A stretch of 64,000 nucleotides of DNA from Podarcis muralis (lineage: Eukaryota): positions 434,001 to 498,000 of the forward strand of contig NC_135657.1 of assembly GCF_964188315.1 (NCBI RefSeq), in the 5' to 3' direction. A model generated the notes under the pieces. That model was not told where the DNA came from and made no database searches. It was given only the letters and a program-made list of their open reading frames with translations. The position numbers were made by a program, and so were the translations under genes. Shown one piece after another: positions 23,437 through 37,121 of this stretch (the first letter of the stretch is position 1; the number at the start of each line of letters is the position of its first letter).

Positions 23437-26400
23437 TCACTCCGTCGTCACTCCGGCCAAACTGCAGCCGTCGCTGGTGTAGGTGAGCGAATCCGTGGAG
23501 AAGCTTTGGCCCGACGCGGCGCTGCAGAGGCTGTGCTCGTGGGCGGCCGGAGGCTCCGTCTCCACCTCCACCGCCACCTCCACCCTGTTCTGCCCGTCCC
23601 TGCGCGGGGCAGAGACCTGGGTCACTGGCGGTAGTGGCGTAAACAAAGCCGGGGGCATAATTTTATGATAATTCCACTTCTCCCCCACGTTTCCCCTCTA
23701 AGGCGCTCAAGGTGGCTCAGGTGGTTCTCCCCGCCGCATGCTATATCCAGAGCAACCCTGTGCGGGAGCTTGGGCCCGGCGCTCTGGCCACTAGACCGCA
23801 CTGCCCCCGCCCCTGGACTGACCTGCGGGAAGAGGCCTGGGCTGCTTCTTCGCTCCACGGGCTCTCCGGGCCCCTCGGGCAGGACTCCTCCAGCTGCCCG
23901 CTGCTCCGGCTGGGCAGGAAGGGGGCAGCCATGGCGGCGGCGGCAGAAGAGCCCCCTCCCTCAGCCCCCATCGGCGTGGGCAGCGCGGCCAGCAGCTCGT
24001 TCACTGCAACAGGCAGAGGGAGGAGGAGAGAGGCTTTGCGGAGAGGTGACGGGCGGCTAATTTATACAGCATCTTATATCAAAAGTTCTCCGGCTGGATT
24101 TAATAATGGCACTGCAGCAGATAAATGCACAACCAAATGAAAATGTTCCTAGTCCGGTTGGCACCGGCAGGCAAACCCCGGCCCGGAGACAAGGATGACC
24201 GGCAGAGGGTCTCTGCCCTAAAGCCCCTTCTATACCGCAGCCCCCCTCCCGACTGAGAGCTCTCCGCCCACCGGTTAGGACGGAGCCTTGGCGGAGGGAG
24301 AGGGGCTTCCGGGCCAGGCCGCCCGGGACTCACGTACGTTTGGCGAGGTTCTCCAGCTCGACGGCGCTGAGCTCGCCGGCCTTCCTGCGGGCGCCTCCGC
24401 AGCCCCAGCGGTTCCGGCACAGCGAGAGCACCACGACCCCGTAGACGTAGGTGAGCATCAGGGGCACCCCGACGCCTGCGGGCAGAGAGGCTGGCGTGAG
24501 GCGCGGCCCAGGAGCAGAGAAAGCCGCCTCCGGCGAGCTCCAGGCAAGGCGTCTCTCCCAGCCCTCCCTGGACCCGGGACCGTCTGCAGGCCAGGCAGAC
24601 GCTCCAGCGCGGAGCTCCAGCTCCTCCATGAAAATGAAGTAAGATTCTAGTCCTGATGGGACTAACAAGAAGAAGAGCAGCAGCAGCTGCATTCAGTAGC
24701 TCCATGCCCTGTAAACTGACTGGCAGCAGCAACTGCTCTCCGGGGTTCGGGGTGGGGGATTCTCAGCCCTTCCTGGAGACTGACCCCTCCGGGACCTTCT
24801 GGGTGCGAGGCAGGTGCTCTGCCCACTGAGCGGCAGCGCCCTCCGCGCCCCCTGGTGGCCCTTACCCACAGTGACGGCGGTGATGACGGGCGAGACGAAG
24901 AGCGAGAGCAGGATGCTGCTGGCGACCGACAGGCACTGCTGGCAGCCGGAGAGCTTGCTCTTGCGCCCGTGGCTCAGCACCTGGCGGAGAGAGGAGGCGG
25001 CGGAGGGGCAGTGGGTCTCCTCGCTCGGGGCCCCTTCAGGCCGGCGCAGCAGGACGGGGACCCTCGCCCAACCTCCGGGGAGCCGCGGCCCCCTTACCTT
25101 CTTGCCCATGTAGATGGGGATGCCCAGCGTGATGACGGGCACGGCGATCCCCGCCACCAGCGAGATCACCATCGGGGCGCCCAGCACCATCCCCAGCTGC
25201 CACAGGACCTTCCGCGTGCGCGACCAGCGCTTCTTCCCCCAAAAGGTGCAGCCGGAAGGACTGGGGAGGAGACAAGGGGGGAGTCGGCAAGGGGGTGTCG
25301 AAGAGCACCCACAGGAGCACCAGAGCGCCTCTTCTGGGGGGCCCCACCACCGGCTCCCCATTTCGCCTTCGGGGGCTCCGTCCAACTCGACACTTCTGTG
25401 AGTCTATGAATTTTGGAAACCTCTCCCAGATCCCTTGGAAGATTGGAGGGGAACGGATCTTTGACAGGTGGGGCAGCCCAACTCACCTGCCCGTCACGTG
25501 ACATCCTAAGGACTGCCATGTGATTGACAGGCGCCCATCCACCTGCCTAACTTTCGCCTCCCTCCCTCCTGATAATACTCCCGCCCCTCCAGGACATCTT
25601 TTGCTCCGGCGGGACTTTGCTTGGTGGGCCACCTTGGCTGCGTTTCATAGAATCACGGAGCCGTTGAATTTTAAAGGGCTCCCCGGGGTCATCCAGTCTA
25701 ACCCGCTGCGATGCAGGCCTCGCATCCCAAGCATCCCTGCTTGGTTGGGAAACTGTTGCCCACCGAGCTGATTATTTTCTTTGGGTTTAGGTTGCATTCC
25801 GTCCTGTCATTTTAGCAGGAGAGAGGGAGGGAATATTTCGCTGTATAAAAAAGGATAAAAAGGTAAAGGACCCCTGGACGGTTAAGCCCAGTCAAATTCG
25901 ACTCTGGGGTGCGGCGCTCATTTCCGCTTTCAGGCCGAGGGAGCCGGGCTTTGCCCGCAGACAGTTTCTCCAGGTCCTGGACCAGCAGGACCAAACCGCT
26001 TCACTACAAACGCCCAGGGAGGCGCTTGCAAACCCAGCCGAGCTCCCTTCCTCCCTTTCGCGTCCGCTTCGACGGGGCTTCCTCCGGGCAAGCGGAGCGA
26101 GGAGGGCCTTAGGCGGCTTCTGCAGGCTCGGAGGGGCCAAGCCTGGTTCTTCTGCCCTTTCCTTCGGCCGCCCCCCCCCCCGACCCCCAGTCGCACCTGA
26201 GGAAGTGGACGTCGGTGATCTCGCGCAGGCAGAGCCAGCAGAAGAGGCAGCCGCAGATGGTGCAGTTCATGCGGTTGCAGCTGCCGTCGTCCACCTTCAT
26301 GATGAGCGCCCCGCAGCGCGGGCAGACCTTGATGGCGTCCTTGTCTGCGGGGAGGGAGGCGGCAGGTCGGGGCCGGGACTTTCTCCGGCCCGGGGGGCAG

Positions 26401-28430
26401 GCCCAGAGAGAGGGGCGTCTAGGCGGGGAGAGGGCCCCCGAAGCCCCCTGGGCCGCGGCCTGCCGGCGCCCCCTCCGCCCTCCAGAAGGGGGCTGCACTC
26501 ACCCTGCGGGGCCCCCGCCGCCCCGGCTTCCTCCTTCCGGATCAGCTGCAGGGAGAGCTCCGTGGCGCCCAGGGGCGCTTGCTGGCTCCATTCTCGCCAG
26601 GCGGGCTGGCACGAGGCGTCGGGGTGCCAGGGCTGCCGGCAGTGGAAGCAGAACTCGGTGCGGCAGTCCGGGCGGGCGCAGACCAGGCGCGGACACTCGG
26701 CGCAGCCGTAGGCGATGACCGCGTAGCTGCAAGCAGAGGCGCCTTTAGAGAAAGGGGAGCCCGACAGGCGCCCCCCCAAGTCCGCCACTGCTGGGAGCGG
26801 GAGGGAGAGCGGGGCTCAGAATGGGAGGCTGGCTTCGCCCTTCCTGGTCCTCCCCGCACAGTGGGACATTTGCCCCCCCCCCCCCTTTACTGAGACCGGG
26901 CTCTCACCTAACCAGATGGTGGTCCTTTCCTGACCTGGCAGAGGGGGGGGGGAGCAGTGAGCTCCACTCTCCACCCCCCCCCCCCAATAAGGAAGGCTCC
27001 GTGAGACGGCTGGCCGGAGCCGCTGCCTGCTACAGTCTGGGGGCCCCGATTCTGCAGCCGGGAATAACCAAACTCTGGTCTCTGGCCTCCAGGCACCAGA
27101 GGCTCCTGGCCGACCCTGGGGGGGGGGGGGTCCTGGCCAGCTGAGCTTCTGATGTGCCTGGACGGTCTTCCTTCCCGAGACCTTTAGATCTTAATACTTC
27201 CATAATCCAATTCAGAACTACACGTGTTTCATCTTAATTGAGGGGAAATGTGTGATGTACTGAGCCGGGAGGGAGCGGGATAACTTTTCTGTTTTCACTT
27301 TCGCAGTTCCATCCTGGGAACAGACTGAGGAGCTGCCCTTCGGCGGAGTCCGAGCCCTCAGCGGCCTCCCCGGCAGGAAGCACAGCTCCTCCTCACCCCC
27401 CCGCCCCCGGGCCCAAGGGTGCTGAAGGAGTAGGGTGTTGATGGGCGTAGCCAAGGGGGGCAGCTCCCCCCCCCCATATCAAGTAAAACAAGAGAAATAC
27501 TTATCTAACTGAACAATCACGTTTGTTCTGCCCCCTCTAAGAAAAGTTCTGATCTCCCTAAAACCAGGTCCTGCCCGCCTATGGAGGGGGGGTCGCAGCA
27601 CCGCCAGGCGGGGAAACAAAGTGAGCGGACTTGGGGGGCGCGGGCGGGCTGTGTGCAGGGGCGCCTTCCCGGCATCCAGGGGTCAAGGATTGGACGCAAG
27701 GATTGGACCCTGCTCTTTCTGGGGGTCTCCCTGGGAAGACCCAGCCGAGCGGCCTTGAGCGCCCTCTGGTGGGAGGCAAGCGCACAACTGCAACCTCCTC
27801 AGCAGCCGCTTCTGGCGAGGCAGCTCCGGGCGGCCCCACCATCTCCCTCCCTCTCTCCGGGGGGGGGGGGGTCAGGCAGGGGAGGGTCTCCCAGGGCCGT
27901 CGGGGATTGGCCACCGGGCCCTTAGGCGCGCAAAGCCGGTCCTTTCCTGGAGCAATCGGGCCTTTCTCCCCACCCCACCCCGCCGGGCTAGCGCACCTGC
28001 AGTCCGGGGCTGGGCACCAGCGCGTTCCCGGGTCGGCGACGAGCAGGCGGCGGAGCAGGTACTCCTCGTACTTGTCTCGCAAGGCGGGCTCCGGGCGCAG
28101 CAGCTGGTGCACCTGGGCGGGCTGGAGCGGGGCCGGGCAGTGCGGACAGGCCACCTGCACGCGGCTCTCGCTGATCTCGACGCGCAGGTACTGCTGCAGG
28201 CAGGTGAGGCAGGACAGGTGCGCGCACGACGAGAGCTCCGGGAAGGCCGCCGCCGGCTGGGGCAGCAGGCACAAAGGGCACTCGCGCCAGCCCCCCGGCG
28301 CCTCGCCCTCCGTGGACGGGGCCCCCGCCGACGCCGCCTCGGCCGCGCTCAGCGCATCCTCCGGCTCCGGCCTCGCTGCCGGCTGCCCTCCGAAGAGGCC
28401 CGAGGCGCCCCGGGAGGGCGGCCGCTTCAT
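23437..28430 (-). CDS. RNF19-family (Dorfin/NKLAM-like) RBR E3 ubiquitin ligase with two TM segments, 521 aa, 8 coding exons; distinct from RNF19A and RNF19B
   Basis: Minus-strand exons: 28430-27997, 26726-26503, 26344-26197, 25260-25098, 24980-24866, 24475-24338, 24003-23823, 23599-23437 (1566 nt, no stops). RING1 [36 protein letters not shown]; [34 protein letters not shown]; RING2 [43 protein letters not shown]; hydrophobic [18 protein letters not shown] and [24 protein letters not shown]; C-terminal RVEVAVEVE. An in-frame upstream TGA fixes the start. Confidence 0.93.
25851..26001 (-). mobile_element. Sauria SINE 3' half
   Basis: aaaggtaaaggacccctggacggttaag...ccagcaggaccaaaccgcttc is the reverse complement of the 3' part of the 48169-48544 copy. 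Confidence 0.8.
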
Positions 28431-29220
28431 GCTGCTGCTGCTGCCGGGCGACGCTGCTGCTGCTGCTGCTGCTGCTGCCCCCGAGAGTCAGGCCCGCGGG
28501 CTGTCCGGGCGGCGGAGGGGCGCCCCGGGACCCGGCTCTTCCCCATCCCCGCCAGCGCCCTCATAGGGCCCGGCTCATCGCCTGCAGGCTCCCAGCGCCC
28601 TGCGGAGGGAAGGCAGCGAGCGCAAGCCGAGCCCCAGCGCCCCGCGCATCCGCTGCGCCAAACCGCCAAGGTCTCCCGGGGAGTAGGGGACTCCGCTCTG
28701 GCAGGTCGGGCTTCCCCCGGGCCTCTGGTCCTCGGAACCGGCAGGGCTCCGGGGTCGCCGCCGCCTTACCGGCCTGGGTCTGCTCGGCGCTCAGCTGAGC
28801 ATCCCCGCAGCTCCAGCGCCGCCGCCGCCGCCGCACAGCATCTTGGGAAGGTGCCCCCCCCCCCCAGAAAGCCCCGCAGTGACGGCTGCACCGGGAGACG
28901 CCGCTTGGCCCCAAGGACGCGAGCGCAGAGGGAGCGAGCGGGGCGCCCGGGAGACGGAGCCTTGGTCACCAAGGTGCGTGGCTCCCGGCTGGCAGGCAAC
29001 GGTGGCCGCGGGCGGGCGGGCGGGCCGTGGGACCGGACTCCAGCGGACCGCAGACCAAGGAAGCCCCCGCTCCTGGTCGGGGTGCTGCCTGGAGCGGAGA
29101 GGCGGCCGCGCCTTTAAAACGGGGACCGGCCTGAAAAGGCCCCCACGGAAGGCCGGTGAGAGGACCCTCGCGAGGGAGCCGGATGGAGCCCCCAGGGAAA
29201 GGAGCAGTGCAGCCCCGAGG
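27900..29220 (-). promoter_or_regulatory. CpG island, promoter and 5' leader of the RNF19-like gene; probable non-coding exon ending at 28770 (donor GTAAGG) and acceptor near 28599
   Basis: Dense CpG; minus-strand ccg|gtaagg at 28770/28769 and ccttccctccgcag| at 28600. The splicing is inferred. Confidence 0.6.
28453..28478 (-). repeat. (CAG)8 trinucleotide repeat in the RNF19-like 5' leader
   Basis: (ctg)n run on the plus strand, plus a second short run at 28431-28443 abutting the ATG. Confidence 0.9.
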
Positions 29221-30405
29221 AGCAGCTGGGAGGATGGCAGCGCGGGGGTTTCCCCGGCCTGCTTCTGAGCTGCTTGTCTGTCCCCTGCTGGAAACAGAGC
29301 ACTGGGGGTGGCGGGGATTGCCGCATCCACCTGCAGGCCTCCTCGGGCTCTTCCAAAGGCGGGGAGAGGCCTCAGGGCCCACACCCAGGGCTTGGGGTCC
29401 TTTTAGGGGAGCACCATTCTCCGTGCAAGAGGCATCGCCAGCAGCCCTGGAGCGGCAGAGCACTGGGGGTGGCAGGGATTGCCTCCTGAAGCGGCAGCAA
29501 CCAAGGAGAGCCCCCGAGGCAAGCTCTGTCCTACAGCTCTGACCACTGGGCAGTTCCCCCTCACGGTCAGCCAAAGCCGGCTTCCCTGCCCGCCCACCCC
29601 CGCCTGCCTCTAGCTCTTTTATGGATTCAGCTGGAGTCGGAGCTGGGCATGTGTGGCAGCAGAATACTGGTCTATTTTCAAGCCTTTGAGTCCCATCCGG
29701 ATGGACAACCGAGTTGCCTCTTCCTCCACCCTGAAAGACTTGCTTTGCCAGCCCCCCCCCCCCCTCGCCCAGTTCGTCTTCCACTGTGGCTCCAGCACTG
29801 GCCGCAGGAGGACCCAAACTGGACATGGAACCTTTGTGCTTCTGTATATAATGAAAGGCAAGGGGGTACCTAGGACCCCCTGCCCCCCCCACAATGGGAA
29901 ATGGAGCGAGGGGGCGCTATTGCCACCCCACACAAGGGGGCTTCTCAAGGGATCACATGTTTTGTTTTTAACTTTTGCTCATGCAAAGGGAGATCTATTC
30001 TATGCTACAAGAGCAGGGCGCTCTGCAGTTCCTCTCTCTCCACCAAGGGTGATGTAAGAAATTCCCTTAAGAACCAGTGGCGAGACCCGGGATGCAGGAA
30101 TCAGTGTGTGATGGGGCATCACCTCTGAAGCGAAGCCGCCTCCAAGAGGGGAGTGTGTGGAGACCCCATTCTTCTGGGGGCCCCTTTCATCCCCAAAGGT
30201 TCCCTTGGGTGCCGCTGCTGCTGTTCCTCGGCTGCTTCTCCCGGCCGACCAGGCTCCACCGGCAGCCACTTGACTTCAGTAGCGGACAGGGCAAACAGCC
30301 CTGCCTTCACCCTTGGGCAGCAGTGAGGGATCATTGTCTTACTCACATCAAAGTCTTGCCAGTATTCAACATATGAAGTGATGAGAATCAGGCAGGCAGG
30401 AATCC

Positions 30406-31322
30406 TTGTTGTTTAGTCGTTTAGTCGTGTCCAACTCTTCGTGACCCCATGGACCAGAGCACGCCAGGCACCTCTGTCCTCCACTACCTCCCGCAGTTTG
30501 GTCAAACTCATGCTGGTAACCTCGAAAACACTATCCAACCATCTCGTCCTCTGTCGCCCCCTTCTCCTTGTGCCCTCCATCTTTCCCAGCATCAGTGTCT
30601 TCTCCAGGGAGTCTTCTCTTCTCATGAGGTGGCCAAAGTACTGGAGCCTCAGCTTCACGATCTGTCCTTCCAGTGAGCACTCAGGTCTGATTTCCTTAAG
30701 AATGGATGCATTTGATCTTCTTGCCGTCCATGGGACTCTCAAGAGTCTTCTCCAGCACCATAATTCAAAAGCATCAATTCTTCGGCGATCAGCCTTCTTG
30801 ATGGTCCAGCTCTCACTTCCATACATCACTACTGGGAAGACCATGGCTTTAACTATACGGACCTTTGTTGGCAAAGTGACATCTCTACTTCTCAAGATGC
30901 TGTCTAGGCCTGTCATTGCCCTTCTCCCAAGAAGCAGGCGTCTTTTAATTTCGTGGCTGCTGTCACCATCTGCAGTGATCATGGAGCCTAAGAAAGTAAA
31001 ATCTCTCACTGCCTCCATTTCTTCCCCTTCTATTTGCCAGGAGGTGATGGGACCAGTGGCCATGATCTTCGTTTTTTTGATGTTGAGCTTCAGACCATAT
31101 TTTGCGCTCTCCTCTTTCACCCTCATTAAAAGGTTCTTTAATTCCTCCTCACTTTCTGCCATCAAGGTTGTGTCATCTGCATATCTGAGGTTGTTGATAT
31201 TTCTTCCGGCAATCTTAATTCCAGCTTGGGATTCATCCAGCCCAGCCTTTCGCATGATGTGTTCTGCATATAAATTAAATAAGCAGGGAGACAAAATACA
31301 GCCTTGTCGTACTCCTTTCCCA
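30406..31322 (-). mobile_element. 5'-truncated RTE-BovB LINE with an uninterrupted RT/C-terminal reading frame
   Basis: GKGVRQGCILSPCLFNLYAE..NLRYADDTTL..DFTFLGS..WCWRRLLRVPWT..RGRQRTRWLD..VHGVTKSWTRLND; tail acgactaaacgactaaacaacaa. Confidence 0.96.
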
Positions 31323-32899
31323 TTGTCCAGTTGAAACTGGAGATTGCTTTCTGAAGAAGAGCAAAGACATCTTTCCCCATCACAGAGAGGAAAAAGGGCG
31401 TGTAGTGACAGGAAGAAGGAGAGATTATTTTTATATTGTTTCCTTACCGCCACAAAAGTTTAGAGGATATGTGACTATCTAGCCGTCATGCAGATCCTCC
31501 GACATACCTGACAATGCTTGTTTCTAATGGTGGGCTACTTGATATAAAGCAGAAGAGTTTGGGGGCTAAATGTAGCGCCTTCAAGGAAATTCAGGGAGTC
31601 CCATAGGTACCCCGGAAGCTTGAGGAAGGGAGCCCGCAATTGTTATGACACTGCTTCTCAAAACTATCGGGTGCCCAACTGGTGTGCACTTTCCTTTTTG
31701 GCTCGCCGCTCTTCCTCTCCATCCCTCGCTGGGTCCTGGTCCAGGGATGCTCGCGGGGTCCCTCTGTCGGCAGCTTCTCTGCGGACTCAGCTCCACCTTC
31801 TGTCGCTCCTTCCCTTTGTGTCCCCCAGTCTAAGGGGCGATGCTTCCTCACTGGCAGGTGGGAGGGGGCTCCAAAGGGGTTTCAAACTGCGGGTGGCTTG
31901 CAGGTGCTGAGTTCCCGGGGTTACTTTTGGCTTCCATTCCACCGCTGTGCTGGGAGCGTGCAGGATCCCACCTAAAGACTGCAATCTTATGCACACTTAC
32001 TAGGGAGCAAGTCCCACTGATCTGAATGGGCTTATGAATAAATATATTTTGGCTAGAAATGCAAATTGTATGTGTTTTCTCTGCTGATCTTACACCAGCG
32101 TAAGATGGCCAGTTCTGCGGGGCCAGAGCATTGCGCGTGACCTGGGTTAGAAAGAGCAGAGAGCCAGGTCTTCACAGCTCTCATTGTTTCAGGATGGAGA
32201 CCCTCGCAGCTCCGCTGAAACCGCAGGTGTCTCCATTTCTAGCTCTGGGGAATTCTCCCTCTGTGCTCTCAGCATCAAAGGGGCTTTGCAGGAGGAGGCG
32301 GGTTGCCGAGGGAGGGGATGCAAAGCCCCCCCCCGCCCTGCAGACCCTTTTCCCCACCCCATCAATGGGACAGCAGGAGCCCCGCCTTCTTTGGGGCCCC
32401 CCACCCTCAACGCGGGACCCCCAGGACTCCCAAACCCACGAGATGACGCCACCGATGGGCGGATCCATGGTGGCTTCAGCCCCGCCTCCCTCGCTTCGGG
32501 ATTCCTGCGCGTGCGCGGATGGAGGAGCATCCCTAGAGATAGAAGAGGGTAGAGTGATAAGAGCATAGACGGGGCTCCCCGACTCGGAGCGCGGCTCCTC
32601 CCCTTCGCTTTCTCCTTGGCCGTCTCGTGGAGCTGCCGTCCAACTGGGGCTTGTTCTTCGGGGAAGCGGCGGCTGCTCCGCGTGGTTTTGAACTTTAAAT
32701 GCCCTGACACCACTTGGAGCCCAAAAGACCAGGCTGACCGATAGGAATGTAACCCCAGGCGGGCCTTGCGCGCAGAGTTACAAGGAGGGAGGAGTTCTTA
32801 AATGGGAGGATGCCCAAACGGGGCAGGAGGGGCCTTTCCGTGGCTGCTTCCCCCTCTTGGGGCGGACCAGGCGCCAGGCAGCCGATCCCCTCGGGCCCA

Positions 32900-33660: not shown

Positions 33661-36600
33661 GACGCGGCGGGCGCGGCGGTCGATCCTCCGGGCGAGGAGG
33701 GCCTGGCTCCGCCGGGCGCCTTCCTGTCGGAGCACGAGCTGGAGCTGGAGGACGAGGACGAGGAGGAGGAGAGCGGCGCCGCCGGCCTCGCCTTCGAGAA
33801 GGACTCGGAAGGTGCGGGGGAAGCGGGCGGCGGGCCGGGAGGGGCGGGAGCACAGCGCGGAATCTGGGGGGCGCAGGGGGGCTGCGGGCCGAGGAAGGGC
33901 TTCCCCAGGGCTGCCAGGGGTCGCTCCCCCCTCCCGCCACCGTGGTAACCCCCTGTTGTGCCAGCAGGAAAGGGACGGGCCGAGGTGAGGATGCCCCCTG
34001 CTGCCCCCCTGATGCCCCCTCCTTGTGTGCCGCAGACTCCCTCGGGGGGACGCCCGGACTCTCCTCCTACGTGCTGAGCGATGAGGAGTTCCCGCCCCTG
34101 TGCCAGGCCCAGGACAATGGCGAGGGGCCCGGCCAGGCTTGCCAGCACTGCGGCCTGCCTGCCCCCGCCTCTGCCGCCTGCTGCCCGCCAGAGGAGGAAG
34201 AGCTGGAGGAGGAGGAGGAGGAGGAGGAGGAGGAAGGTTCCGCCAAGGGGCGGGTGGTCTTCTCCTGCCAGCTGTGCCCCTTTGCCTCGCACTACTCCAG
34301 CCACCTCAAGCGCCACATGAAGACCCACAACGGGGAGAAGCCCTACCGCTGCCCGCACTGCCCCTACGCCTCGGCCCAGCTGGTCAACCTGACGCGCCAC
34401 CTGCGCACCCACACGGGAGAGAAGCCCTACCGCTGCCCCACCTGCCCCTTCGCCTGCAGCAGCCTTGGCAACCTCAAGAGGCACCAGCGGGTCCACGGCC
34501 AGGAGCGCCCGCTGCGCTGCGGCTCCTGCACCTGCCGATGCGCCCGGGGCAACCCCCTGCGGCGCCACAGCCCCGGGGCGCAGGGGGAGTCGGAGGCGGA
34601 GATGGAGGGGCCAGCGGCTGCGGAGCAGGAGACAGGTATGTGGGGCAGGCCGGGGGTGGGGGTCCAACCCCTTGCAAAGCAGAAAGATTTCCTGACAGAT
34701 AGCCGCTCAACAGCTGCTTAGCAATCTCTAGTGAAGGAGAGTCCACACCCTTATTAATGAGCCGGTTCCATTCCTGAACAGCTCTTACTGTCAATAGTAA
34801 TAGTAAATCATGTTATTGTTTTTACCCCGCCCGTTTGGCTGGGTTTCCCCTGCCACTCTGGGCTGCTCCCAACAGAATATTAAAAACACGATAAGACATC
34901 AAACATGAAAAGCTTCCCTAAAGAGGGCTGCCTTTAGATGCCTTCTAAAAGTGAGATAGTTGTTTATTTCCTTGACATCTGATGGAAGGGCGTTCCACAG
35001 GGCGGGCGCCACCACCGAGATGGCACTCTGCCTGGTTCCCTGTAACTTGGCTTCCACAATGAGGGAACCACCAGAAGGCCCTCGGCACTGGACCTCAGTA
35101 TCCGGGCAGAATGATGGGGTGGAGACGCTCCTTCAGGTATACTGGGCTGAGGCCGTTTAGGGCTTCAAAGGTCAGCACCAACACTTTGAATTGTGCTTGT
35201 ACCAGGAGCCAATGTAGATACTTTAGCACTGGTGTTACATGGTCCTGGCGGCTGCTCCCAGTCACCAGTCTTGCTGCCGCGTTCTGGATTAGTTTTAGCT
35301 TCCGAGTCCCACCTAGAGTGCATTGCAGTAGTCCAAGCAGGAGATAACTAGAGCATGCACCACTCTGGCGAGACAGTCTGCGGGCAGGGAGGGTCTCAGT
35401 TTATGTACCAGGTGGAGCTGGTAGACAGCTGTCAGGAATCTCTTCCTAATGTTTAATGGGTATCTCCTTCCTAGTTCTTTGAATCAAAGAAAGGAGAATG
35501 TGACTGAATGTTGGGAGTAACTTTCAGACAGTAAGAGCTGTTTAGCTTTGGAACAAAAGGATATTGACAAGCTGGAAGGGAGACCAGGATGAGCAAGGAG
35601 TCTGGAAATCCATCCTTACAAGGAATGGTTGTGGGAGTTGGGTCTGTGTAGCCTGGAGAAGAGAGCCAGAGTTTGACCCCAGGAGGGGAGAAGGCTCTTG
35701 GCCACTGCGAGTACAGGAGGCTTGACTAGAGGGGCCCCTGGCCTGATCCAGCAGGCTTTTCGTATGTTTTTATCAACCCTAGCAATGTAGAGTTGTAAGG
35801 GGGGGGGGCTGAGGGTCATCTAGTGCAGGAATCTCAACTAAAGCCTTCCTGACAGATGACCGTGAGAATCCTGGAAATGCTGTCCCCTGCAAGGTGGAGC
35901 CAGGTTATTTTCTGCTGCTCCAGGGGACAGGATCTGAAGCCTTGGCTTCAGATGACAAGGGAGGAGATTCCGACTTAACATTAGGAAGAACTTTCTGGAG
36001 GTGAGAACTGTTTGAGAGGGGAATGGGCTCCCTCATACGGTGCAGGACTCTTCTTCAGAGCTTGCAGGTCTTTCACCAGAGATTGCTTGGCCATCGATCA
36101 GCGATTCCTGAGCAGCAGCAATTCCTACGTAAGGGATTGGACCAAGGGACCCTGGAAGTCCCTTGCGACTGATTTTAAGCCATTCCCAGCAAGGTAGTGG
36201 GGAACACTCTCCTCAGACCCCTCCTTAGCTAAATAAATGAACCAGCAAATCCCCTTTTCTGCTTCCCAAGATGGTGGCCTCCTCACTGGAAGGGATCTCC
36301 AGCCTAACCTCTACGGGGTCGGCAGAGTCCAGCAGTGTGGGAACCAGCTTTGGAGCAGATAAGAGGATTGGGGGGCTCTTAGGTGGACACTGCGTGCAGG
36401 AGCGCAGAACGTGGGTCCCTCCCCCAGCCCCTTTTGCCCCCCTCACTGCTCTTTCTCCTCCGCAGAGCCTCCGCTCTTGGCCCCGGGCTCCCCGTTCCTG
36501 AGGCCCGAGGACTCTGCGGCAGTCCTCCCGGAGCTGCTCTTCCCCTTCACGTGCCGGGCGTGCGGACTGGTCCTGGAGGCGGACGAGGGCCTGGGCGAGC

Positions 36601-37121
36601 CGGTGTGCGGGCGCTGCAGCCTGGCGGTGCTGGGGGCGGAGCAGTCGTCGCCCAAGGGCTTCTCGTGCCAGCTGTGCCCCTTTGTCACCACCTACCCCAA
36701 CCACCTGGCGCGGCACATGAAGACGCACAGCGGGGAGAAGCCCTTTGCCTGCGCCCTGTGTCCCTACGCCTCGGCACACCTCGACAACCTCAAGCGCCAC
36801 CAGCGGGTGCACACGGGAGAGAAGCCCTACAAGTGCCCGCTGTGCCCCTACGCCTGCGGCAACCTGGCCAACCTCAAGCGCCACGGCCGCATCCACTCGG
36901 GGGACAAGCCCTTCCGCTGCCGCCTCTGCTCCTACTCCTGCAACCAGAGCATGAACCTCAAGCGCCACATGCTGAGGCACACAGGAGAGAAGCCCTTCCA
37001 GTGCCGCATCTGCCCCTACACCACCGGCCACTGGGACAACTACAAGCGCCACCAGAAGGTGCACGGCCAGGGCCTGCCTGAGGAGGAGGGGGGGCCCAGC
37101 CTGGACAGCAGCCTCCCTTGA
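33442..37121 (+). CDS. ZNF513: Zinc finger protein 513, 482 aa, 4 exons
   Basis: Exons: 33442-33481, 33659-33811, 34036-34635, 36466-37121 (1449 nt). MPRRKQRHPQPVK start, acidic FEKDSE region, 3 N-terminal and 5 C-terminal C2H2 fingers (HYSSHLKRHMKTH, YPNHLARHMKTH, GHWDNYKRHQKVH) matching ZNF513. Confidence 0.97.
34800..35421 (-). mobile_element. L2 LINE 3' fragment in ZNF513 intron 3, flanked by CR1 fragments (about 34660-34790 and 35420-36200)
   Basis: The minus strand encodes an L2 ORF2-like end ([25 protein letters not shown]) and shares its terminus with the 51190-51586 copy. Confidence 0.8.

Follow-up and report, generated by a model that had tools for sequence, protein, structure and literature searches.

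Reviews that start from the human set count 12 to 14 RING-between-RING (RBR) ubiquitin ligases (PMC3940038, PMC7658342), and a survey of these enzymes that follows human nomenclature lists only Dorfin and IBRDC3, the products of RNF19A and RNF19B (PMC1570150). RNF19A, acting with UBE2L3, ubiquitinates the small molecule BRD1732; the RBR core, Cys316, and one or more transmembrane segments are required for this activity, and the N- and C-terminal extensions are dispensable (PMC13038411). Here we analyzed a 64,000-nucleotide (nt) stretch of the genome of the lizard Podarcis muralis (contig NC_135657.1, positions 434,001 to 498,000; hereafter, the window) and found on its minus strand, at positions 28430-23437, an RNF19-family gene whose 8 coding exons (1566 nt) encode 521 amino acids plus a stop codon. 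We estimate a probability of roughly 80% that the gene is intact and transcribed and encodes a third vertebrate RBR ligase of the RNF19 (Dorfin/NKLAM) subfamily, which we refer to as C-type. The protein is already in public databases under inconsistent automatic names. To our knowledge, the only human RNF19 genes are RNF19A and RNF19B, and the C-type is not in the human gene list.

The C-type resembles RNF19B (NKLAM, also IBRDC3) in its RING1-IBR-RING2 order, an 11-residue linker, two helices, an acidic motif (VEVxVDIE type in RNF19B), and identical introns, with about 44% identity over the whole alignment. The two proteins differ in that RNF19B forms a separate clade, lies in an adenylate kinase/ZMYM4-type/NDUFS5 neighborhood instead of beside ZNF513, and keeps the His and Glu of the catalytic triad together with a tail of about 300 amino acids, while the C-type replaces both residues and has a tail of about 126. 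The C-type also evolves much faster, given that bird and lizard proteins are about 65% identical over the core compared to about 98% for RNF19B. RNF19A has the same architecture and introns as well, and the part that suffices for its activity on BRD1732 (PMC13038411) is the one that the C-type retains. Unlike the C-type, RNF19A lies in a PABPC-type/SPAG1-type neighborhood (in pipefish), keeps His and Glu, and carries a long C-terminal extension, which the C-type lacks and which is reported to bind mutant SOD1 and the calcium-sensing receptor (PMC3940038). The nearest solved structures are those of ARIH1 and ARIH2 (HHARI and TRIAD1), whose RING1-IBR part aligns with E values of 3e-14 to 2e-12 and whose Cys relay is the same in principle; they differ from the C-type in lacking transmembrane segments, in having an Ariadne autoinhibitory domain, and in keeping the His-Glu triad. 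A search of the PDB found no RNF19 structure. HOIP (RNF31), which is not a close relative, functions as an RBR ligase although its third triad residue is Gln (PMC3940038), like that of the C-type of fishes; it differs in keeping the His essential for transfer, in being soluble, and in containing a linear-chain determining domain.

The first homology query was the stop-free open reading frame (ORF) at 27582-28487, of which only the exon 1 part scored; database orthologs were used as later queries. About 100 clusters of proteins 430-529 amino acids long matched this ORF. They represent snakes, Rhineura, Varanus, Tiliqua, Alligator, and many birds and are named mostly "RNF19B-like" and in some cases "RNF19A-like," "RN19A," or "RNF19B." The window protein is 73-77% identical to those of other lizards, about 64% to those of snakes, and 60-67% to those of birds and the alligator. 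When the Rhineura ortholog was searched exhaustively against representatives clustered at 50% identity, the best match from outside the sauropsids was a salmon protein that aligned nearly end to end and whose relatives, 570-680 amino acids long and present in gar and across teleosts, are named RNF19A or RNF19B haphazardly. A protein-atlas search returned generic RBR clusters only. The window gene is orthologous to the sauropsid "RNF19B-like" gene and to this 570-680-amino-acid gene of gar and teleosts. The initial annotation of the locus, made from the sequence alone, had proposed a gene retained in reptiles, labeled "RNF19-like," and functionally unstudied. Retention in squamates and crocodilians was borne out, but the gene is not reptile-specific and is also kept by birds and ray-finned fishes. 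The naming was much as anticipated, with plain RNF19A and RNF19B labels in addition, and our searches of the literature for RNF19-like names and for RNF19/Dorfin evolution, whose coverage did not extend to subscription papers, found no description of a third RNF19 paralog. This mislabeling as RNF19A, RNF19B, or "-like" runs across hundreds of genomes and can corrupt orthology-based transfer of function and comparisons of expression.

Canonical RNF19B, sought with a bird query, was present in chimaera, sharks, sturgeon, gar, teleosts, coelacanth, caecilians, and frogs and, among amniotes, in turtles, many squamates, platypus, marsupials, and placentals. Both the C-type and canonical RNF19B were found in Rhineura (P0005 and P0416, respectively), gar (P0397 and P0520), and Nerophis (P0385 and P0122), while Syngnathus typhle has C-type P0389 together with RNF19A P0123, and birds likewise hold canonical copies. 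We considered that the window gene could simply be the canonical RNF19A or RNF19B of P. muralis, relocated and with no separate canonical copy elsewhere. No point in support of this idea was found. The canonical RNF19B of at least 13 squamates is 97-98% identical to bird RNF19B over the core, compared to 60-67% between the window protein and its bird orthologs, Rhineura has both genes, the window protein falls outside the RNF19B clade, and its tail of 126 residues contrasts with roughly 300-450 amino acids in RNF19A and RNF19B. Judged from the window and the database proteins, relocation of a canonical gene is next to impossible.

The position of the protein was assessed in a tree of 48 sequences and 548 columns (IQ-TREE, LG+C20+F+G4 with posterior mean site frequencies [PMSF]). 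The C-type proteins formed a clade with support of 100/100, made up of sauropsids (100/100; squamates and archosaurs) and actinopterygians (99/98), and within the latter gar branched first, followed by Scleropages with Megalops and then other teleosts, as in the species tree. The RNF19B clade (100/100) ran from chimaera to sheep and also followed the species tree; the fish RNF19A clade was supported at 98/88, and the window protein lay outside both. RNF19A, RNF19B, and the C-type together formed a vertebrate clade (96/99) with respect to amphioxus, tunicate, crinoid, bivalve, tick, and shrimp sequences. A different history would have a duplicate of RNF19B or RNF19A inserted between PPM1G and ZNF513 in sauropsids or squamates only and evolving fast, with the likeness to fish proteins produced by long-branch attraction. 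The database name RNF19B-like fits such a duplicate, as do the long stems of the C clade (0.93 substitutions per site) and of its sauropsid part (0.66). However, a constraint in which sauropsid C-type proteins join RNF19B while those of fishes stay outside was rejected (log-likelihood difference, 147.8; approximately unbiased [AU] test, P = 1.3e-34). In addition, fish and sauropsid C-type proteins share many residues, including the active-site Arg, that are unlike the consensus of RNF19A, RNF19B, and invertebrates, the ZNF513 ortholog is head-to-head with the gene in both fish and sauropsid, and the branching inside the clade follows the species tree. We consider a lineage-specific duplicate very improbable. 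The initial annotation had described the protein as neither RNF19A nor RNF19B, as different from both where the two agree, and as ancient, and all three descriptions agree with the separate clade, the canonical copies alongside, and the inclusion of gar and teleosts; nesting inside RNF19A or RNF19B and a lizard-only duplicate, which it had named as the outcomes that would contradict it, were not obtained.

The tree also contained an extra, very divergent "RNF19A-like" protein of the dragonets Synchiropus and Neosynchiropus (P0137, P0402-P0405), with a branch of 1.09 and DWGCNHMVC in RING2.

The genomic neighborhood of the C-type is likewise conserved. In the window, a PPM1G-type PP2C phosphatase gene with a poly-Glu insert (approximately 13856..19500, plus strand; Pfam PP2C, E = 2e-30) lies tail-to-tail with the ligase gene, and a ZNF513-type C2H2 zinc-finger gene (approximately 33900..37121, plus strand) lies head-to-head with it, as judged from ORFs and Pfam matches and as the initial annotation had stated. 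The crane locus (L002) has exactly this arrangement, with a divergent C2H2 zinc-finger gene, the C-type, and a convergent PP2C gene in order. The head-to-head neighbor of the C-type in Takifugu (L001) is a zinc-finger gene orthologous to that of the window, to which its two zinc-finger clusters are, in order, 69% (191 amino acids) and 77.5% (80 amino acids) identical. Bird and fish synteny, proposed earlier as a check, thus speaks for the same locus in both. In pipefish, RNF19A sits between PABPC-type and SPAG1-type genes, and RNF19B adjoins an adenylate kinase gene, a ZMYM4-type gene, NDUFS5, and a plakin gene; the three fish RNF19 genes hold three distinct conserved neighborhoods. We take the neighbors of pipefish RNF19A and RNF19B to be those of human RNF19A (8q22) and RNF19B (1p35), and the C-type neighborhood presumably corresponds to human 2p23.3, where PPM1G and ZNF513 are known to be adjacent.

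Mapping of exact exon chains showed that intron positions and phases are identical in the C-type genes of the window, crane, and fugu and in pipefish RNF19A and RNF19B. The first four shared introns fall at CPAPDC|2, |1|..DIK, H(Y/F)L|2|SPSGCTF, and G(R/K)K|0, and the last three at (V/S)V|1|G(V/I)GVP, at a phase-1 site past the second helix, and at a phase-2 site directly before R(D/E)GxN.EV. Since these positions and phases are common to all three genes, the duplication took place at the DNA level and the gene is not a retrocopy, in line with the initial annotation. The RNF19 duplication postdates the split from amphioxus and tunicates and predates the bony-vertebrate ancestor. Given that the C-type is shared by sauropsids and ray-finned fishes beside ZNF513, the bony-vertebrate ancestor had three RNF19 genes, and the third is still used by birds, reptiles, and fishes. 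From the vertebrate-specific node, together with paralogous pairs that link human 2p23.3, 8q, and 1p35-36 (SNX17/SNX31, NRBP1/NRBP2, FNDC4/FNDC5, TRIM54/55/63, and SLC30A3/8/2), we infer that the C-type is an ohnolog of the two rounds (2R) of whole-genome duplication that sauropsids and ray-finned fishes have retained and that disappeared from the PPM1G-ZNF513 interval of mammals. The mammalian loss we infer from the human gene catalog and from the lack of a mammalian match among those seen rather than from a genome search. The 2R origin and the pattern of loss are put forward tentatively because no C-type from a cartilaginous fish, cyclostome, coelacanth, amphibian, turtle, or mammal was seen among the matches listed. 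The best indication of absence is that, although many turtle and mammal genomes have been annotated, none of the approximately 100 C-type clusters (166-528 amino acids) is from either group. A pair of N-terminal fragments considered as turtle copies (P0001 and P0259) were rejected as snake or other squamate sequences. The C-type would add a dated case to the catalog of ancient paralogs missing from mammals.

The gene model of the initial annotation (8 exons, 521 amino acids, canonical splice sites, an RBR module, and two transmembrane segments) was confirmed by ORFs, Pfam, hydropathy, and RNA. The window sequence contains no N, and all seven introns of the gene are GT..AG. Coding exon 1 (27997..28430; ATG at 28430-28428) encodes a low-complexity N-terminus, RING1 (amino acids 51-98, 28280-28137), and the start of the IBR and is joined to exon 2 by RNA junction 26726|27997; database orthologs likewise begin with MKRP or MKQP. 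Coding exon 2 (26503..26726), joined onward by 26344|26503, encodes the remaining IBR and a linker, and coding exon 3 (26197..26344) encodes RING2 (Rcat). With the exons scanned separately in Pfam, RING-type matches on exon 1 had E values of 0.003-0.005, under the gathering score for a lone exon, the IBR match was divided between exons 1 and 2, and exon 3 exceeded the cutoffs of both IBR (28.9 bits) and IBR_1 (29.3 bits). The RING1-IBR-RING2 set is in order, and all Cys and His zinc ligands align with those of RNF19A, RNF19B, and invertebrate RNF19. Coding exon 4 (25098..25260; junctions 25260|26197 and 24980|25098) carries the 11-residue linker and hydrophobic segment 1, and coding exon 5 (24866..24980) carries the loop and the first half of hydrophobic segment 2, as judged from hydropathy and RNA. 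Coding exon 6 (24338..24475; 138 nt, in frame) encodes the second half of that segment, to amino acid 381, and the juxtamembrane part. Its donor is GTACGT at 24337, which keeps the frame and reproduces the ortholog junction ENLAK|LNELL; an alternative donor, the GT at 24333 (4 bases downstream), was rejected because it breaks the reading frame. Coding exon 7 (23823..24003), joined to exon 6 by 24003|24338, encodes a disordered tail with a polymorphic Ala (GCC) run, and coding exon 8 (23437..23599; stop at 23439-23437) opens with an RDGxNxVEVxVEVE motif, about 40 amino acids from the end. Upstream, the 5' untranslated region (UTR) extends over at least 28431..28807, contiguous with exon 1 and with a (CAG)n run directly before the ATG. 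A CpG island spans the 5' end (28000..29300; GC content, 0.748; observed/expected CpG, 0.80), and a predicted AATAAA polyadenylation signal lies at 23247-23242, 190 nt past the stop, with the poly(A) site reached by no read; the CpG-island 5' end and the signal had both been noted in the initial annotation.

Transcription of the gene was evident in RNA data from the same organism. Of the words sampled from the 5-kb stretch, 17-26% were present in eight RNA-type runs, which is approximately the exon share. A 2077-nt contig from run X1 and a 781-nt contig from run X5, the latter from another study, represent spliced ligase mRNA. Six junctions were seen in these contigs (the five given above together with 24475|24866), and a seventh, 23823|23599, can be deduced from coordinates within the contig, the repeat there having been passed over in placement. 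Record 1 of the X1 contig covers 28487-28807 and 27997-28416, so that the 5' UTR reaches at least 28807. Compared to the assembly, the GCC run that encodes Ala in exon 7 is longer in the RNA contigs, with in-frame insertions at 23932 of 6 and 12 nt. A 22-nt insertion was also present in the RNA contigs at 23430, in the 3' UTR just past the stop, and the length differences at both places are likely alleles.

We also considered whether the gene could be a decaying or untranslated relic in this species. The low RNA depth fits a relic, as do an extreme GC content at third codon positions (GC3; 0.94, compared to 0.80 in crane and 0.71 in fugu) and the repeat-length polymorphisms in exon 7. On the other hand, the 521-codon frame is open across eight exons and the insertions seen are in frame, correctly spliced mRNA comes from two studies, no zinc ligand has been lost, and the ratio of nonsynonymous to synonymous rates (omega) is 0.22. 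A relic is a highly unlikely explanation. The value of 0.22 was obtained against the crane ortholog by the Nei-Gojobori method (NG86), with a synonymous divergence (dS) of 0.96, which is near saturation. The regional values were 0.19 for the RBR, 0.09 for the membrane region, and 0.31 for the tail, and against fugu omega was 0.25 with dS saturated. Purifying selection is therefore what the dN/dS comparison, one of the checks proposed with the initial annotation, indicates for this gene.

Annotated isoforms about 46 amino acids shorter, lacking exactly exon 6, occur in snakes, several birds, and the alligator (P0002-P0004, P0009, P0016, P0041, and P0064), and exon 6 is present in both RNA contigs of P. 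muralis. Skipping of exon 6 is in frame and, judging from the encoded residues, would change the membrane anchor because the exon encodes the second half of hydrophobic segment 2 and the juxtamembrane part.

The most distinctive feature of the C-type lies in its catalytic site. A Cys-His-Glu/Gln triad has been described for parkin, HHARI, and HOIP, and substituting its residues abolishes ligase activity in vitro; for HHARI, the main effect of the His is on the release of ubiquitin from the Cys (PMC3940038). In the window protein, the catalytic Cys is Cys242 (codon 26279-26277), but the His expected two residues past it is Arg244 (26273-26271) and the acidic or amide residue expected at the third position is Leu253 (26246-26244). 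We counted these residues in all sequences fetched, comprising 215 C-type proteins and 257 other family members. The Cys is invariant in both sets (215/215 and 257/257). The triad-His position is Arg in 212 of the 215 C-type proteins (His in 2 and Cys in 1) and His in 250 of the 257 others, while the triad-Glu position is Gln in the fish C-type (120) and Leu in the sauropsid C-type (95), compared to Glu in 241/257. The stretch from RING2 to the first helix is near-identical in RNF19A, RNF19B, and every invertebrate RNF19 (DGSCNHMTC..C.(C/A)EFCWLC), and the corresponding stretch includes (G/A)C(Q/L)FCWLC in all C-type proteins. Further departures common to the fish and sauropsid C-type are TRWCPAP, AECP, S(R/Q)TRK, GM(V/L)LGAP, (M/V)VISL, and TYVYG. 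The two His exceptions are isoforms of one eagle, Haliaeetus albicilla (P0016 and P0018; CNHMNC), and the Cys exception is a falcon, Falco peregrinus (P0072; CNCMNC); each may reflect either a genuine substitution or an error in sequencing. The conserved His-to-Arg change amounts to a natural experiment on the role of the RBR triad His, and the C-type is amenable to knockout study in zebrafish or chicken.

We think that the C-type protein is probably an active ligase that works by relay from E2 to Cys242 to substrate. In the mechanism that we propose, the N-terminal RING1-IBR-RING2 module would sit on the cytosolic face of a membrane, to which the two long helices would anchor it. A charged E2, in all likelihood of the UBE2L3 type as for RNF19A and RNF19B, would dock on RING1, and ubiquitin would pass to a thioester on Cys242 in RING2 and from there to the substrate. 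The substrate-binding C-terminal extension of RNF19A and RNF19B is cut to about 126 disordered residues that retain only the acidic VEVxVEVE motif, and the discharge step would be altered, being slower or using another acceptor or base. This step probably differs from that of RNF19A and RNF19B because, across the clade, Arg stands in place of the His that is the general base of other RBR ligases, and Gln or Leu in place of the Glu.

A less conventional role has to be weighed here, namely, that the C-type loads Cys242 but discharges poorly to lysine and acts instead either as a regulator, pairing or competing with RNF19A and RNF19B for E2 or membrane sites, or toward a non-lysine or nonprotein acceptor. 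The counts given above lean in this direction, with Arg nearly throughout the C-type and Glu replaced in all of its members, while the rest of the family keeps both residues from arthropods to mammals. So do the inactivation of other RBR ligases by triad substitutions in vitro, the unloading role of the His in HHARI (PMC3940038), and the ability of RNF19A and RNF19B to ubiquitinate a secondary amine of a small molecule (PMC13038411). However, neither the Cys nor any zinc ligand varies and the RBR shows the constraint expected of an enzyme (omega, 0.19), HOIP is functional with Gln at the third position (PMC3940038), and the His in one eagle and Cys in one falcon at the Arg site suggest that the site tolerates some change. 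We regard this role as doubtful compared to that of an active ligase. In the same tentative spirit, we suggest that the C-type clade might be an RBR ligase with a rewired Cys-Arg-Gln/Leu site, under selection for more than 400 million years and lost in mammals, which carries out His-independent discharge to a non-lysine or nonprotein acceptor at the membrane or serves as a ubiquitin-loaded regulator of RNF19A and RNF19B.

Several observations weigh against our interpretation of the gene as an intact, transcribed third RNF19-subfamily ligase. If parkin, HHARI, and HOIP are a guide, transfer to lysine would be crippled without the triad His. RNA depth is low (4.8-8.6 assembler units), and in two raw RNA-seq runs the junctions are crossed by single reads only. 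In the tree, the long stems of the C clade and of its sauropsid part meet, and RNF19A is sparsely represented, by three fishes, a partial bird sequence, and a divergent fish copy. Of the possible orders in which the three types split, none was rejected (C with B, P = 0.51; C with A, P = 0.15; A with B, P = 0.29), the long C stem blurring the position of the C-type relative to the other two. Finally, among the matches listed, which were length-filtered and did not include searches of vertebrate genomes, no C-type came from mammals, turtles, amphibians, coelacanth, cartilaginous fishes, or cyclostomes.

The membrane region and tail place the protein in the RNF19 subfamily and separate it from the canonical members. 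Two hydrophobic stretches (amino acids 286-321 and 338-381; Kyte-Doolittle) lie directly past RING2, to which they are joined via the 11-residue linker, as is characteristic of the subfamily. In the AlphaFold2 model of the Rhineura ortholog, RING1 is confident (predicted local distance difference test [pLDDT] score, 85-96), the IBR and RING2 are moderate, and long helices span residues 284-331 and 336-386 (pLDDT, 72-88), while the tail, including the motif, scores below 50 and is disordered. The last exon measures 745 nt in pipefish RNF19A and 430 nt in pipefish RNF19B compared to 160-235 nt in the C-type. In all three genes, it opens with an acidic alternating motif, of the VEVxVEVE type in the C-type and VEVQVDIE or LEIQVDIE in RNF19A and RNF19B, and a crinoid and a shrimp have a comparable motif. 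Both the short tail and the EVxVEVE motif, which the initial annotation had pointed out, are thus present, the tail past the second helix being 126 residues long and the motif standing at the start of the last exon.

Among the other features of the window, a reverse-transcriptase fragment on the minus strand (30416-31453; 346 amino acids open; Pfam RVT_1, E = 1.5e-18) lies between the CpG island of the ligase gene and the ZNF513-type gene, so that these divergent genes have no tight shared bidirectional promoter. Farther along the window are an exon for an SNX17 FERM-C domain and an IF-2B (EIF2B4-type) gene, identified from ORFs and Pfam. The whole window is GC-rich, with 1-kb bins reaching 0.78.

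Some of the RNA signal within the gene appears to have other sources. Hundreds of RNA reads at 23322-23339 and 23933-23953 match over 18-21 nt only, in (GGCA)n-like and (GGC)n runs, and then continue into unrelated sequence (GGCTGGCTGG... and GACGGGACTGGTCGGGG...). Since these reads match low-complexity sequence only and are unlike the locus beyond it, they derive from an abundant transcript from elsewhere. An apparent joint from 23339 to 23933, with deep coverage at 23247-23443 and 23838-24034, was accordingly rejected as off-target, the share of reads that run on unlike the locus being 0.98-0.99. Within intron 3, an interspersed repeat at 25808-26004 has an RNA-contig depth of 787-1005 with many loose ends and looks like a SINE-like element expressed from many loci and not from the ligase gene.

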